From Phaeosaccion multiseriatum (taxonomy: Eukaryota; Protista; Ochrophyta, other classes), in the NCBI GenBank assembly GCA_965112735.1, contig OZ218954.1:2480001-2544000 (forward strand): a DNA stretch of 64,000 bases, read 5' to 3'. The position numbers and the translations under genes are program-made. Of this stretch, positions 2,731 through 15,420 are shown one piece after another (the stretch's first letter is position 1; each line of letters begins with the position of its first letter). The notes beneath the pieces are model-generated. The model searched no databases and had not been told where the DNA came from. It saw nothing but the letters and a program-made list of their open reading frames with translations.

Positions 2731-5700
2731 ATGGAGGTAGTACACGACAAGGTGGACCTGCCTAACGTGCAGAGCAGCAAGCCCGAGCAGGTGGACCCAT
2801 CGGTGGACCACATCAAAGGGTCGAACTACTACAAGCCGGGCTACTACCCGCCCGATGAGGTGGTGAAGGAAGTGGATTCGCGAGACAAGGTACGGGGGGC
2901 TCGGTGTCGGCACTGATTCAAGAAAAGACGTTAAATTCAGCGTTAGAGTCTCTAATCGTTTCGTGGGCTCTCTACTTTGGATATCTGCCTCTGCGAAGGG
3001 CACTCCTGACGAGTGGATTCCGCGCCACCCGGAGCTCGTACGACTGACTGGACGCCACCCCTTCAATGTGGAGCCTCCTATTGTGAGGGAGTTTGACCAT
3101 GGCTTCATTTCACCGACGAGGTGAGCGGATGGCGTGCAGGCTGGTTTATGTGAGCATTTTTCTCTCGAAGAAAATTCCGCGTTTTCACACTGCTTTCGCG
3201 ACTTGTGCCTGCCCAATCCTACGCTGCAGCCTGCACTACGTGAGGAACCATGGCGCTGTGCCCACGAACCTCGACTGGGACACCCACGTCATTAAGATTG
3301 GAGGGCTTGTGGACCGGCCCATGGAGATGACAATGGCTCAGCTCACGGGAGGCGACTTTGAGATTGTCACGCTGCCCGTCACACTGGTCTGTGCGGGCAA
3401 CCGCCGCAAGGAGGAGAACGTGGTCAAGCAGGTGAGCCATCATTAATTATGGAGCTGCCTGTGACCATCTCTCTCTTTTGGTGTGACGTACTCATTTCCC
3501 GAACGTGCGTGTGCTCGCAGGGCCTTGGGTTTTCGTGGGGACCTGCTGCCGTGTCCACATCACTGTGGACGGGAGTCTGGCTCAAGGATATCCTCAAGCA
3601 CGTGGGCATCAAGAGCATCGAGGACGGGGCGAATCACGTCTGCCTGGTGGGCACAGAGAAGCTGCCTGGGGGGTTGTATGGCACCAGTATTCGCAGGGAG
3701 GTGGCGTTGAGCGAAAGGGACGATGTTCTCATCGCGTTTGAGCAAAACGGCAAGCGTCTCACGCCGGACCACGGCTACCCTGTGCGTGTAATCATTCCTG
3801 GTTACATTGGGGGCCGGATGATCAAGTGGCTGGCAGACATTACGGTGACGGCCGAGGAGAGCGACAACTACTACCACTACTTTGACAATCGCGTGCTTCC
3901 CCCTCAAGTGGATGCCGAAAGGGCACTGTCGGAAGGCTGGTGGTACAAGCCCCAGTACATTATCAACGAGCTCAACGTCAACAGTGCGACAGTGTACCCG
4001 GCCCATAATGAGGTGTTGCCAATCGCCAAGGCGCAGACGTACACGATCAAGGGCTATTGCTACGGAGGCGGGGGCATCGCCATCACACGCATGGAAGTCT
4101 CCTTTGACGACGGGGACACGTGGGAGCTCTGCGACCTCATGGTGAGTGTACATGTTAGTATTTACTGCGCCTTGTGGCTTTTTTTAGATGCCTTGTAGCT
4201 GTACCCTCAACGCTGCCGCTGTTGCTGCCACAACTTCTCGTTGCCCGACCAGACAACGGAGAAGCCGAGACCAACGGGCAAGCACTGGTGCTGGGTGTTC
4301 TGGCAGTACGAGGTGGACGTCGTCAGGCTCCTGAATTGCAAGGAGATCTTGTGTCGCGGGTGGCAAGGGCAAAACACGCAGCCCAACAAGTTGACCTGGA
4401 ATCTGTTGGGTATGATGAACAACAGCTGCTTCCGTGTGAAGATCCACCCTCACCGTGTTGAAGAGACGGGGGAGATGGCTCTCAAGTTTGAGCATCCCAC
4501 CCAGCCAGGCGCACAGCCTGGAGGATGGATGCTCAGGAAGTATCCTCAACAGGCGGTGGCGACAGTAAAGAAGGAGGTGGCAAAGACTGGAAAGACATTC
4601 ACACTGGAGGATGTTGCCAAGCACGACAAGGACGACGACTGCTGGATCGTCGTGGAGGGGAAGGTGTACGATGTGACCAAGTTCTTGGATGATCACCCGG
4701 GTGGAAAGACGAGGTAAGCTCGCGTGCCGCTGAAAAGAGGGTTTTACCACAAGCAACAACCGCTCACCTCTGTCGTCTTTTCTGCCCCCCCCCCCCCTCC
4801 CCAAATGACCCTGATATGTGCAGTATCACCATGACCTCGGGGGAGGACAGCACGGACGAGTTCAACGCTTTGCACAGCGAGAAGGCCAGAGATATGTTGG
4901 CAGATTACCTCGTCGGTGATGTCGTAGCCTCGGACAAGCCTGCGACAGAGGCTGCTGTCGAAGCGGAGGACACGGCCTCTAACGGCGTCAAAGTGACACT
5001 GCAGGGAAAGAAGAAAGTTGCCTTGAAGCTCAAGGAGAGAGAGGAGCTCACGCACAACTCTCGGCGCTTCCGATTCGCGCTGCCCTCCGAGGAGCACTTG
5101 CTGGGGTTGCCTGTTGGGAAGCATTTCTTCGTCTCGGGAACGTGGAAGGGAGAGCATGTTATTCGGGCCTACACGCCGACGACTGGCGACGAGGTTGCTG
5201 GGTACGTAGACCTTGTCATCAAGGTCTACAATCCATGCGAGCGCTTTCCCGAGGGTGGCAAGATGAGCCAGCTCTTAGACAGCTTGGCAATTGGAGACAC
5301 CATTGATGTGAAGGGTCCCCTGGGCGAGATTGAGTACCATGGGGACAGCAAGTGGACCATCCACGAGGAGGCACGCACCGCGGACAAGATTGCAATGCTG
5401 GCGGGCGGCACCGGGATCACACCCATGTATCAGGTGGCCAAGGAGAGCCTAGCCAACGCTGCGGACAGCACCCAGTTTTGGCTCGTGTACGCGAATGTCA
5501 GCGAGGACGACATTTTGCTCAAGGATGAGCTGGACGCCTTGGCCAAAGCCCACCCCGATCGATTTAGGGTATGGTACACTGTGGACACGGTTGTCAGGCC
5601 CGACGAGTGGAAGTGCAGCTCCGGGTACATTGACGAGCAGATGCTGCGCGATCACCTCCCTCCTCCCGGCGAGCATACGGTGGCGCTCATGTGCGGCCCC

Positions 5701-7873: not shown

Positions 7874-8265
7874 CTATGGTATTGGCATTGTCATGGTCGT
7901 CGGCCTCTGCTTCCCCCCCCTCCTCTGCTTCCAGGCTTGCGTTCGGCCCTTCCGCTCCTCCAGACTATGGGTGTAAAGAGAGCTACAGCTACGTTGATGA
8001 CACCTTGATGACGTACTCGCGGTACGGGGAGTGTCCCGCCTGGTATGGGCCTGGTAAGATGTGTTCGCTAGACTTGACAGGTCGTCGCGTTGAGTCGTTC
8101 GACGGACTCCCGGATCACTTGCGCGCCATGATTGCGCAAGTCGTTCCAACATTCTCTGACCTGGCAGAGTCAGTGGAAGCTTTTAGGGCGCAAGGGGCGG
8201 AGGCACTGCAGATACTGTTCTCTCCTCCAAGGGAGGCTTGGTGGAAGATTTGGAAACTGCCCTAA
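6672..8265 (+). CDS. hypothetical protein with N-terminal signal peptide (3 exons)
   Basis: Hydrophobic N-terminus MQVLSLLWLLLLALRVRA; ORF pieces 6672-7181, 7221-7508 and 7792-8265 bounded by plausible GT/AG sites. Confidence 0.6.
7518..7930. repeat. intronic (CTT)n/(CCT)n/(CT)n pyrimidine microsatellites
   Basis: Directly visible runs. Confidence 0.9.
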
Positions 8266-8743: not shown

Positions 8744-11700
8744 CTATCTTCCTTTCTCCTCATCGTCACTAAGTAAGACCTTTGTGATGTCCTTTTCTAT
8801 TGTTCGGCTCCTGTCTTGGAGCGCGTAAATCTTGTTGCGGAGAGGAACGATCTTGGAGTACATAAACTTGAGCTTGCAGTACAGGCGGGCCTCGCTGGGT
8901 TCCCACTTGTTTTCAATCTTTCGCTGCATGGTGAGCGGATAATCGTGCTCCAGCTGATCTGCAAGATCCCGGAGCGGAATGCGGCAGCACCCAATCCTTT
9001 TCGGGGCGGGTGACCGGACTGTAATGTCGAATACCACTTCAGCGTCTTGTGTCCGGACTGGAGCCATGACGAAAACTTGATTGAACTCCATGGCAGCGCC
9101 TTCGTCCCTCTTTCCCTTAATGCCTGCTAAAGAAGCGCCACCACCCGCAACCCCGACTCCTCTCCGTCTTGCGCCGTGGGCAGGCCGAGAAGCTTGTGGA
9201 GCCGGACCGGGTGGTACTTTGTCGCCCTGCTTGGTGCAGCGCAAGGACATAATAACACTCGTCGCGCTGGGATCCTCTTGCAGGCCCTCGAGGCGGATAA
9301 GCTTGATATTCAGGCACCCCAAGGGAAGGCCGTGCTTTGTCTCGCCAATTTGCGTTTGGTCGTTGAACGTCTCATTCTGGTAGGCTGCTTGCAATTGCTC
9401 CTTTGCCACTTTCAGAGCACGCGATACCTCCCGTAGCTCTGCGCGCAATTTGCTCACTGCTGCTGATGTCTCCTTTCGATATACTCGCTTCTGCTTGCTC
9501 ACAAACTTCAGTCCGTCGATATCCAAGTTGCCTTGATTGTCGCCCCCCCCAGCCCCCTCTCCCACGTTTCTCTCTCTGTCGTCGTCTCGGACGAAGCCGT
9601 GCTTGTGCTTCTGCACGATAAAACGGTGGCGTTCGATCACCGTACGAAGCCAGTCTGGCTCGTCACTTACGCAAAGGTGCAGTATGACCTTCAGCCCAAG
9701 CAGGGCATGTTCGAGGATGAGCCAGGTCAGAAACTTGGTTTCCAGACCCTTGTCCATCAACGTCCCGCTCGTGAAGCAAATAATGGCAGTATTGCTGAAC
9801 ACAGAGAGGTAGCCCATCGCCTCGGACAAATTGCTCCACATGCCCTATCAAGTGTGGCAAAGAACACGGGAAGGACACGGTCGCAATTACAAGTGCATCC
9901 TCTTCGTTGGGGGGAAGGGAAAATGGACGCCTGGAACTCCCATCAATCAGTCCACAGACACCGAAAACGACACCCCCTGACTACTTACCACGTCCTCTGC
10001 TTGCTCCGGGTATGGCCTGCGCAGCAAGCTCACAAGCTTGAAGCTGTCCACACGAATCTGCAACAGAATTTCTAGCATGGCCAGAAACACCACAGCCGGA
10101 AAACCTGCCACAAACATGGTCACATATCCGTACTGGAGCACGATGGCGGCATAGTCGTCAAAGGTCCCCTCGTAAGGGGGCTTGATGAGCTCGGACTCAA
10201 ACGCCTCCTCCTCCATAGCGACGCCTTGCTCCTCAGTGAGCCCGCTGCTAGCATCCTTCTCCTTCTCTTCCTGGCGTTCCTTCTCCTTCGCCGTCGCTTT
10301 CCAGGATGCCAAGGCATACGGGTGCCCCAGTTCCACGGCCGTCATGAGGAAGCGAACAATGAAGATGCTGAGGAGCAGTTCTCGCAGCTCATGGACACAG
10401 CTAGGTGAGCAGCCGTAGAGGGAGCCTTTGATGAAGCAATTGTAGAACAAAGCCGCGTAGTTGTTGAACATTTGAAACAAAAAAGTCTTGAAGATGAGGT
10501 TGTCCTCGTAAGAAGTCTCCGTCTGGTAATTCTCCAGCTCGTTGAGGTGGCGAACGCCGTGGGAATAAAACCAGCTCAGGACCTGAATTTGCACACTTGA
10601 CAGAACGCTATAATACAACGCACAGCAACAGGGGCGAGGTGGGTTTGGGGTATGTTGGAGGCATTTTATTTTGAGGGAAACGATGGCAACAAGGGCAAAA
10701 CTAAATCACCGCCTACCTTCCTGCCGTGCTTCCCCAGCTGTAGCCCTTCACGTCTTCTAGATAGTACTCCAACCATTCGACGAACTGGACAGCACCACAG
10801 AGCGCCACGATAAAAGTGACGATGAAGAAGAGACCAAGAGCTTGCCGGACCTATGCATGTGTTGGGGGGGCGAGGGGGGGGGGGACATGGAAAATGAGAA
10901 CAAATGTAAAACGTACCACTTCCTCTTGCGTTCATTCTCTCTCGCCATACCTGTCGCTTTTCGTCTGGGAAGAATGTCTCGTAAGTGTTTGTTACCGGGC
11001 TACGCCGCCTGCCTCCGTCGGGGGCATCTTTGTCTCCTCGGAAGGAAGGTCTGTCTTTCTCTACCTCCTCAAAGCCCACCGTACCCCACTTGACGGCCAC
11101 AACCTTCTCCTCTCGCTGCCACAGCTCCTTGTAAATGGTGTTCCACACAATAATCATAACAACCACTGCCACCTGCACAGGGTCCCAGCCGACCTCGTGA
11201 AAAGTCAAGCCGTTACTCCAAAAGTAAATCTCCGAGCCGATGCACAGCAGCGAAGGCACGATGAGTGCGTAACCATAGAAACCCAGCCAAGCAAAGTAGA
11301 ACGCTAGCTTCTCGCCAAAATAGTCGCGAACATCCTCGAGAGGCTGGCTGAAAGCGCGCAGGTACCACGACACGGCGACGCCCTCGTCCATCTCGCGCAT
11401 GCTGACCATGGGAGCACCCAAGCGGTCGGCTTCTTCTCTCCAGAAGAACACCCATCGCTTTTGTAGAACCTGTGGGCAACAAGGCACATAATTTACTCTG
11501 TCATGCTCCCGCACCTTTTGTATGGGACCGGACCGGACAAAGCTCGGTCAGCACTAACCTCTCTCGTAATCTTGTCTCCCCGATTGGCGTCGTGCAGGGC
11601 TGTGACGGACAGTACGACGCCCTTCTCTTGTAGAACTCCGAGGTCAAAGTACGAATCTATTATAGCTTTGGTAAGGATGAGGCGATCCTTGGCTCGAAAT

Positions 11701-13977: not shown

Positions 13978-14605
13978 TCATCCGCAAGGCTTGATACGGA
14001 AGTGCAACGAAACCAGAGAAAAAACAAGACATTTGAGGTCTTGGATGAGGTAGTAGAAGATGCGGAGCCCCTCCGGGTCCTTGCTCTCCTGGACGTCGAG
14101 CAGTGAGCCAATCTTGGCACAGGTAAAGGAAATGTGTTTGTCTCCGAGCTTCACCTCCAGCTCCTGCCGTCCGACTCTGTCCGGCTCTGGCCACGCCGCA
14201 TCGTTCTCCGCCGTCACCTCACTGTCCTCGATGATCCGCTTCACCTCGTCAAGAACAGCCCCGGAGACTGTCACCTGAGGGAGAAGCTGAGTCAGCAGCA
14301 GCATGATAAACGGACACCTCCCAGAGTGGGGCCCGACTCACCTCCTTCCGTATCATCTTGTCATTCTTGTAATTGGAATTGTTGGCGTAGCGGAGCAGAC
14401 CATTCGGTTGAAATTCGAACTCCATGAACTCGTGCCCATGTACTCCCTTGTGCCCGACACTTGAGTTGGACGGAGCGACGAACAACGACGTTGTGGCACA
14501 GCGAGTTAAGAGCAAAAGGGGGCAGGGTTGAGGAAAAGGGGGGGGCGTGATGGTTTGGCCAGAAGTTTGAACTTACTAGTAGCGGCAATAGAATTCCTCC
14601 CCCAT
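13978..14605 (-). CDS. MAGO: Mago nashi, exon junction complex core subunit (2 introns)
   Basis: [10 protein letters not shown]|[65 protein letters not shown]. Confidence 0.97.
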
Positions 14606-14813
14606 GGTAGGGGTGGATCCTGTGTGAGGGTAGTGGGGGGTATGGGGAGGTTCAGCTGGCCTCTCTGCTTATTATCATCTTCACAGCGCCCGCTAATTTT
14701 GGATTCATTGACATAGTCATACCGAGCGCCGAGCACCCACACAGCCGACTCCTCCCCTATCTTTTTCCGTACAAACGCAACGTTCCCCTCAGTCAATAAC
14801 ACCCACCAGAGTC
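14606..14813. promoter_or_regulatory. putative bidirectional promoter shared by MAGO and Y14
   Basis: 208 bp between divergent start codons. Confidence 0.65.
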
Positions 14814-15420
14814 ATGGCGGAGGAGGTAGATTTCGAGCCGGATGCAGATGAGATGGAGGACGAGGTTCCTCCGTCGGCAGCAGCTGGGGTCGAGACCGGT
14901 GGTGCACCTGAACAGGCCGAACCTGCTGCTGTAGCATACACAACGCGTGGGCGTGGTCACACGAAGGACGGAAAGGACAGAGGGCGGTACGAGACGCTGG
15001 GGGGGGGGCAGAACGGGAAACATCTTCGAAGCGTGGAGGGCTACGTGCTGATAGTTCGAGGCGTGCACGAGGTGAGGCAGCGAGAGCACACGGGAAATGA
15101 GCTGCCTACCTAGCCAAGCCCTTTTGATTACTTTCTCACCACGGCCCTCTCTTTGATCTCTTCCGGATCCTATATATCAGGAGGCCCAGGAGGATGATAT
15201 CCTGGACAGCTTTGGGGAGCACGGCGAGGTGAAGAATATTCACGTCAATCTGGATAGGCGTACGGGCTTCGTCAAGGGTTACGCGCTGGTGGAATTTGCC
15301 AAAGAGAAGGAGGCAGAAGCGGCCATTGCGAACATTGGTGGAAAGGAAATGTTGGGACAAGTCATCAGCGTGGACTGGGCGTTCGCTCCGCACAGGGGCG
15401 GAGGGAGGAGGAGGAGGTAG
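14814..15420 (+). CDS. RBM8A: Y14/RBM8A RNA-binding protein, exon junction complex (1 intron, ~15072-15180)
   Basis: RGRGH, RSVEGYVLIVRGVHE|EAQEDDILDSFGEHGEVKNIHVNLDRRTGFVKGYALVEF, ISVDWAF. Confidence 0.96.

Follow-up and report, generated by a model that had tools for sequence, protein, structure and literature searches.

A head-to-head Mago nashi-Y14 gene pair across a 208-bp spacer in Phaeosaccion multiseriatum, with linked counterparts in two brown algae

The two proteins that form the Mago nashi-Y14 heterodimer of the exon junction complex (EJC) are unstable apart from one another and dose-sensitive in animals. To our knowledge, human, fly and Arabidopsis all carry the two genes at unlinked positions, and only a few divergent gene pairs for both partners of an obligate heterodimer are well documented, namely those of the histones and of some integrins. 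Histone pairs (H2A-H2B, H3-H4) share with the genes described here that both partners of an obligate 1:1 heterodimer have their genes head-to-head, separated by a spacer of a few hundred base pairs. The histone arrangement, however, is conserved in most eukaryotes, is often present in many copies, and comes with demonstrated shared regulatory elements and cell-cycle control, whereas Mago nashi and Y14 (RBM8A) form a single-copy pair of one algal clade, with a spacer conserved neither in length nor in sequence and a shared promoter that is presumed.

More broadly, a survey of 64 eukaryotes found a tendency towards functional relatedness among conserved divergent pairs whose spacers are short, with the genes for the ribosomal proteins L13 and S16 as an example (PMC2871058). 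The Mago/Y14 pair resembles these in its conserved head-to-head orientation, in its short spacer and in the fact that the products belong to one complex, but its conservation, covering Phaeosaccion and two brown algae, is narrower; neither the text nor 7 supplementary files of that survey mention it. In unicellular holozoans, integrin alpha and beta genes are found as head-to-head pairs, which in Capsaspora are co-expressed (PMC5560861). Here too, the genes for the chains of a heterodimer have been kept head-to-head in one lineage, although the proteins and the lineage are different ones; Y14 and Magoh appear in that work only as marker genes for NMD and the EJC, with no mention of their linkage. 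A study of MAGO/Y14 co-evolution does not discuss linkage either (PMC3885619). In line with an earlier note on this DNA, which knew of no description of the arrangement, we found no report of it in a literature search whose coverage takes in few subscription journals. The linkage of Mago and Y14 is thus apparently undescribed, while divergent pairs of partner genes are an already known phenomenon, as the histones, L13/S16 and the holozoan integrins illustrate.

The window that we analysed is a stretch of 64,000 nucleotides from the genome of Phaeosaccion multiseriatum (contig C5:2,480,001-2,544,000), and coordinates of the Phaeosaccion locus are counted from its first letter. With its exons rebuilt from the window, Mago nashi lies on the minus strand and comprises three exons and 147 codons, from the ATG at 14605 to the stop at 13978. 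Exon 1 (14577..14605) encodes M-G-E-E-F-Y-C-R-Y, matching the start of Ascophyllum Mago, and is followed by a 117-nt intron of phase 2 (14460..14576, GTAAGT...AG), by exon 2 (14342..14459), by a second, 67-nt GT-AG intron (14275..14341), and by exon 3 (13978..14274), which ends in the stop codon at 13978-13980. Homology searches were run exon by exon, the exons being joined only for the frame check and the codon count. On the Mago_nashi profile (PF02792, curated cut-off 27 bits), exon 2 scores 64 bits (E 2e-17) over positions 7-45 and exon 3 scores 153.9 bits (E 3.5e-45) over positions 46-141/142; both are above the cut-off, together they cover almost the whole profile, and they are in register on either side of the second intron. 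In a search of the PDB, exon 3 matched the human MAGOH and fly Mago chains at ~1e-45 over the aligned stretch, and exon 2 is 80-87% identical to the corresponding exon of other stramenopile Mago genes. Of the columns that are invariant among 12 diverse Mago proteins, 63 of 66 are kept, the exceptions being K17V, D74N and K143R.

Two features of this gene deserve separate mention. Within exon 2 (14342-14458, minus strand), Val-His stands in place of the Lys-Phe (K17/F18, motif GHKGKFGHEF) of the 12 reference proteins, brown algae included; K17 is otherwise invariant in this set, and F18 is found in at least 90% of it. Furthermore, the exon structure differs from that of related genes, in that neither Ectocarpus nor Ascophyllum has the second intron, and what is a single exon 3 in Phaeosaccion is divided among three exons in Heterosigma, Ectocarpus and Ascophyllum, the breaks falling at 14209/14208 and 14122/14121.

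Y14/RBM8A, likewise rebuilt from the window, lies on the plus strand with two exons and 165 codons, from the ATG at 14814 to the stop at 15420. Its first exon (14814..15071) encodes an acidic N-terminus, which is kept in Ectocarpus and Ascophyllum with the pattern MA[E/D]EVDFEPE, together with the start of the RRM; a 109-nt GT-AG intron of phase 0 (15072..15180) separates it from the second exon (15181..15420), which completes the RRM and ends, after an Arg-Gly-rich tail, with the stop codon. A Pfam search with exon 1 alone returned no domain. Exon 2 matches RRM_1 with 51.9 bits (E 7e-14), and its ten best matches in the PDB are all RBM8A/Y14 chains (5e-26 to 1.4e-22), the next being PUB1 at 1e-13. 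The protein has the small size expected of Y14, and it carries an acidic extension at the N-terminus and an Arg/Gly-rich tail that closes the C-terminus with GGGRRRR. Conservation of the N-terminus, MAEEVDFEPDADEMEDE..., extends to brown algae: it reads MAEEVDFEPD in Phaeosaccion vs MADEVDFEPE in Ectocarpus.

Both Phaeosaccion proteins are clear orthologues of the subunits of the EJC heterodimer (PDB 1P27, 1HL6, 1OO0, 2HYI, 2J0S). Judging from the orthology of Mago to chains that were co-crystallised with Y14 (1p27, 1hl6, 1oo0, 2hyi), the two would be expected to form the same heterodimer. The earlier note had placed MAGO (ATG 14605, minus) and Y14 (ATG 14814, plus) 208 bp apart, which proves correct to the base on the rebuilt models, including the strands, and the Pfam and PDB matches bear out its identification of the genes as Mago-Y14 heterodimer partners sharing one short divergent spacer. 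That the adjacency might be an artefact, either through a misjoin or because one of the genes is a pseudogene or a retrocopy, is extremely improbable: we found no point in favour of this, the sequence is continuous without N, the GT-AG introns are canonical and the frames intact in both genes, each gene is the sole copy in the 22-contig assembly of 67 Mb, and two independently assembled brown-algal genomes have the same arrangement.

The ATG-to-ATG spacer (14606..14813) measures exactly 208 bp and is presumed to hold a shared promoter region together with both 5' leaders. Mago and Y14 are a divergent pair, lying head-to-head with their ATGs well within the ~1 kb that is set as the limit for bidirectional-promoter pairs and with no gene between them, and the spacer contains no credible ORF. 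In scans of 14606-14813, TATA and CCAAT boxes were absent, and a scan for Inr elements yielded nothing distinctive. The base composition of the spacer is mirrored, with a GC skew of +0.55 in the 70 bp beside Mago, a skew of -0.60 in the 68 bp beside Y14, and a more AT-rich centre at about 14658-14735, which means that both leaders are rich in C when read in the sense direction of their own gene. Judging from upstream ATGs, the transcription start site of Mago would lie at or below 14677 and that of Y14 at or above 14643. With only 208 bp between the two ATGs, this one TATA-less, compositionally mirror-symmetric spacer has to accommodate both core promoters as well as both 5' leaders. It is therefore very probable that a single nucleosome-free promoter region serves both Mago and Y14, which in consequence would be co-regulated.

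A 12-nt inverted repeat with 92% complementarity (14595-14606 / 14813-14824) extends across both start codons. Its origin is the shared beginning of both coding sequences, ATGG[G/C]GGAGGA (M-[G/A]-E-E), and we do not regard it as a regulatory palindrome, since it is probably a coding coincidence or a common start-codon context.

The same two genes are immediate head-to-head neighbours in the brown algae Ectocarpus siliculosus and Ascophyllum nodosum, where they are ~4-5 kb apart. In Ectocarpus (FN649742.1), Mago is on the plus strand and has a minus-strand RRM_1 gene upstream of it, with no annotated gene between the two, and tblastn and tblastx identify this RRM_1 gene as Y14 (76% identity over 37 aa of the RRM). 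Its ATG lies near locus position 2637 and Mago exon 2 starts from 7968, giving a distance of ~5.3 kb across an assembly gap, a figure that is approximate because the spacer holds 1930 N. Ascophyllum, which belongs to another brown-algal order, has the same layout: in the locus from CAXNAB020000480.1, the ATG of Y14 at 5682 (minus) and that of Mago at 10001 (plus) are 4318 bp apart, and the sequence between them contains no called gene, no ORF of more than 115 aa and no Pfam match. The adjacency is hence not unique to the Phaeosaccion genome, and its recurrence in two brown algae argues that it is not an accident of one genome. As to the gene models available for these species, the public Ectocarpus Mago model (129 aa) looks truncated, its start being an internal Met at 8001 while the beginning of exon 2 is at 7968, and so does the public Ascophyllum Y14 model (99 aa), which is without the conserved N-terminal exon at 5682-5512.

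The spacers themselves have little in common. An alignment for conserved motifs, as proposed in the earlier note, came out empty by blastn among Phaeosaccion, Ectocarpus and Ascophyllum: with 7-nt words, the Phaeosaccion spacer yielded chance-level matches only to either brown-algal spacer (E at least 0.3), a search that short motifs could escape, and the Ectocarpus and Ascophyllum spacers gave no match to each other at E up to 1e-3.

Outside this group, the pair was not recovered. We considered five further stramenopile genomes, from one raphidophyte, one eustigmatophyte, two pelagophytes and the oomycete Phytophthora. Y14 was not found within 10 kb of Mago in Nannochloropsis, Aureococcus and Chrysophaeum, the Chrysophaeum Y14 gene being on a different contig from Mago, nor within 6 kb of Mago in Phytophthora. 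In Heterosigma there was no Y14 within 10 kb of Mago either, a search range that is to be seen against the great length of the genes in this alga, where Mago alone spans 13 kb. Synteny across ochrophytes and oomycetes, which had been put forward as a check, is thus partly borne out, with the pair present in Ectocarpus and Ascophyllum and not found in Phytophthora or in the four other ochrophytes, which indicates that the linkage is lineage-limited. In a metagenome scan, none of 80 environmental Mago loci carried Y14; the upstream sequence measured 1 kb or more in 44 of these loci, 2 kb or more in 32 and 5 kb or more in 20, and the loci resemble pelagophyte, green-algal, opisthokont and other sequences. 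Conversely, two environmental Y14 lineages with compact genomes had no Mago nearby. Both were detected by the Y14 query at ~1e-32, which confirms the sensitivity of the method. Since no linkage of Mago and Y14 was found in the other lineages sampled, subunit balance can evidently be achieved without linkage.

The flanks of the pair are of interest in this context, as they provide a measure of how far gene order has otherwise been retained. In a tblastx comparison of positions 1-34,000 of the window with the brown-algal and Heterosigma loci, Mago and Y14 were the only matches. The immediate neighbours of the pair in Phaeosaccion are a gene for a membrane protein with an Sm_multidrug_ex domain (PF06695), which lies to the right of Y14 on the minus strand and is convergent with it, and a gene for a protein without a Pfam domain. 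The Ascophyllum homologue of the former is on a 631-kb contig, while Ascophyllum Mago is on a 463-kb contig. In turn, the Prefoldin_2 gene that adjoins Mago in Ascophyllum has its counterparts in Phaeosaccion on other contigs. The Sm_multidrug_ex homologues of Tribonema and Chrysoparadoxa have no Mago or Y14 nearby, an observation that bears on the synteny of this neighbour only. Mago-Y14 is accordingly the sole surviving adjacency in a small sample, the background rate having been sampled at a handful of neighbouring genes.

The Sm_multidrug_ex neighbour also helps to place Phaeosaccion among its relatives. Its homologues in Chrysoparadoxa, Ectocarpus, Tribonema and other brown algae are 58-63% identical, compared to 53% in the raphidophyte Fibrocapsa and 45-50% in diatoms. 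In a tree of this single gene, Phaeosaccion falls into a clade with Chrysoparadoxa, Tribonema and the brown algae, which is supported at 98/97 and unresolved inside, with Fibrocapsa and the diatoms outside of it. Its short introns and small genome speak against Phaeosaccion being a brown alga itself.

These data bear on whether the linkage has one origin or two. A separate origin of the head-to-head pairing in Phaeosaccion and in brown algae would fit the ~20-fold difference in spacer length, the lack of common spacer sequence, and the partly different intron positions in both genes; the Y14 intron of Phaeosaccion, for instance, is absent in Ectocarpus, where the two exons match directly adjoining stretches (488-399 and 398-288). 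However, two named genes would be expected to adjoin by chance with a frequency of about 1 in 10^4 in a genome of about 15-20 thousand genes, and convergence would call for two origins of the same pair in the same orientation, each at ~1e-4, in lineages that are within one well-supported clade. The two lineages moreover have the N-terminus of Y14 and the first Mago intron in common, the latter being identical in position and phase between Ascophyllum and Phaeosaccion (after M..FYCRY-TA). We therefore regard convergence as very unlikely. Most likely, the adjacency and orientation of Mago and Y14 were inherited from an ancestor common to Phaeosaccion and the brown algae, and the pairing would have persisted while the neighbouring genes that we checked changed. 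Overall, we favour, with moderate confidence, an ancestral divergent Mago-Y14 pair of this clade, which in Phaeosaccion would have one shared promoter region and whose genes would therefore be co-regulated.

How the short spacer is to be understood depends in part on its surroundings. The genome is very compact around Mago and Y14. The last matched exon of the Sm_multidrug_ex gene reaches 15615, less than 200 bp from the stop of Y14, so that the 3' UTRs of the two genes must overlap or be very short. Against this local compaction, a head-to-head spacer of 208 bp is not special. It is also of note that a third EJC-related gene, PYM (Mago-bind, PF09282), is on another contig (C8:3076798-3076878), which argues against a larger EJC cluster and leaves the heterodimer pair only; the notion of an operon-like EJC module does not hold up in this respect. 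A whole-assembly profile search with the Btz/CASC3 domain (PF09405) gave no match, a blank that does not show absence.

As the main alternative, it is possible, if short of probable, that Mago and Y14 are simply neutral neighbours, which came to lie next to each other by chance once, in the ancestor of the clade, and were never separated, with the 208 bp reflecting compaction and no selected co-regulation or role in stoichiometry. Other intergenic distances nearby in the window are just as short, the brown-algal spacers of 4-5 kb are not a compact shared promoter and their sequence is not conserved, and all other lineages sampled get by without the linkage. Given thousands of protein complexes, finding one adjacent pair post hoc would also not be very improbable. 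On the other hand, adjacency and head-to-head orientation have been kept in three genomes in which every other flanking adjacency that we checked is broken, and large surveys show an enrichment of functionally related genes among conserved divergent pairs (PMC2871058). Retention despite broken flanks, taken together with this known enrichment for functional partners, supports some constraint on the pair.

The strongest form of such a constraint would be that Mago-Y14 is a selected co-expression unit, held since the common ancestor of Phaeosaccion and the brown algae while synteny around it decayed, owing to the advantage of making the two partners of an obligate heterodimer in balanced amounts. 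We put this forward tentatively, as a rather doubtful extension of the favoured, ancestral-pair reading; the shared promoter, the co-expression and a selective benefit for subunit balance are what we infer from the arrangement of the genes. The earlier proposal of a histone-pair-like promoter that fixes the stoichiometry of the two proteins is weakened by the kilobase-scale spacers of brown algae, by the lack of conserved spacer sequence and by the general compaction of the locus.

Our understanding of the EJC is unchanged by the Mago-Y14 pair, and most eukaryotes clearly do not need the linkage. Gene order in eukaryotes shows few signs of being important, and conserved divergent gene pairs are one of them; a lineage that hard-wires Mago and Y14 to one promoter region would provide a natural test of linkage as a buffer of stoichiometry. 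In practical terms, the 208-bp spacer is a candidate compact bidirectional promoter for transgenes in the algal group to which Phaeosaccion belongs. If the reading as a selected unit were true, the pair would show a eukaryote using an operon-like solution outside the histones, for a complex that acts in RNA processing.
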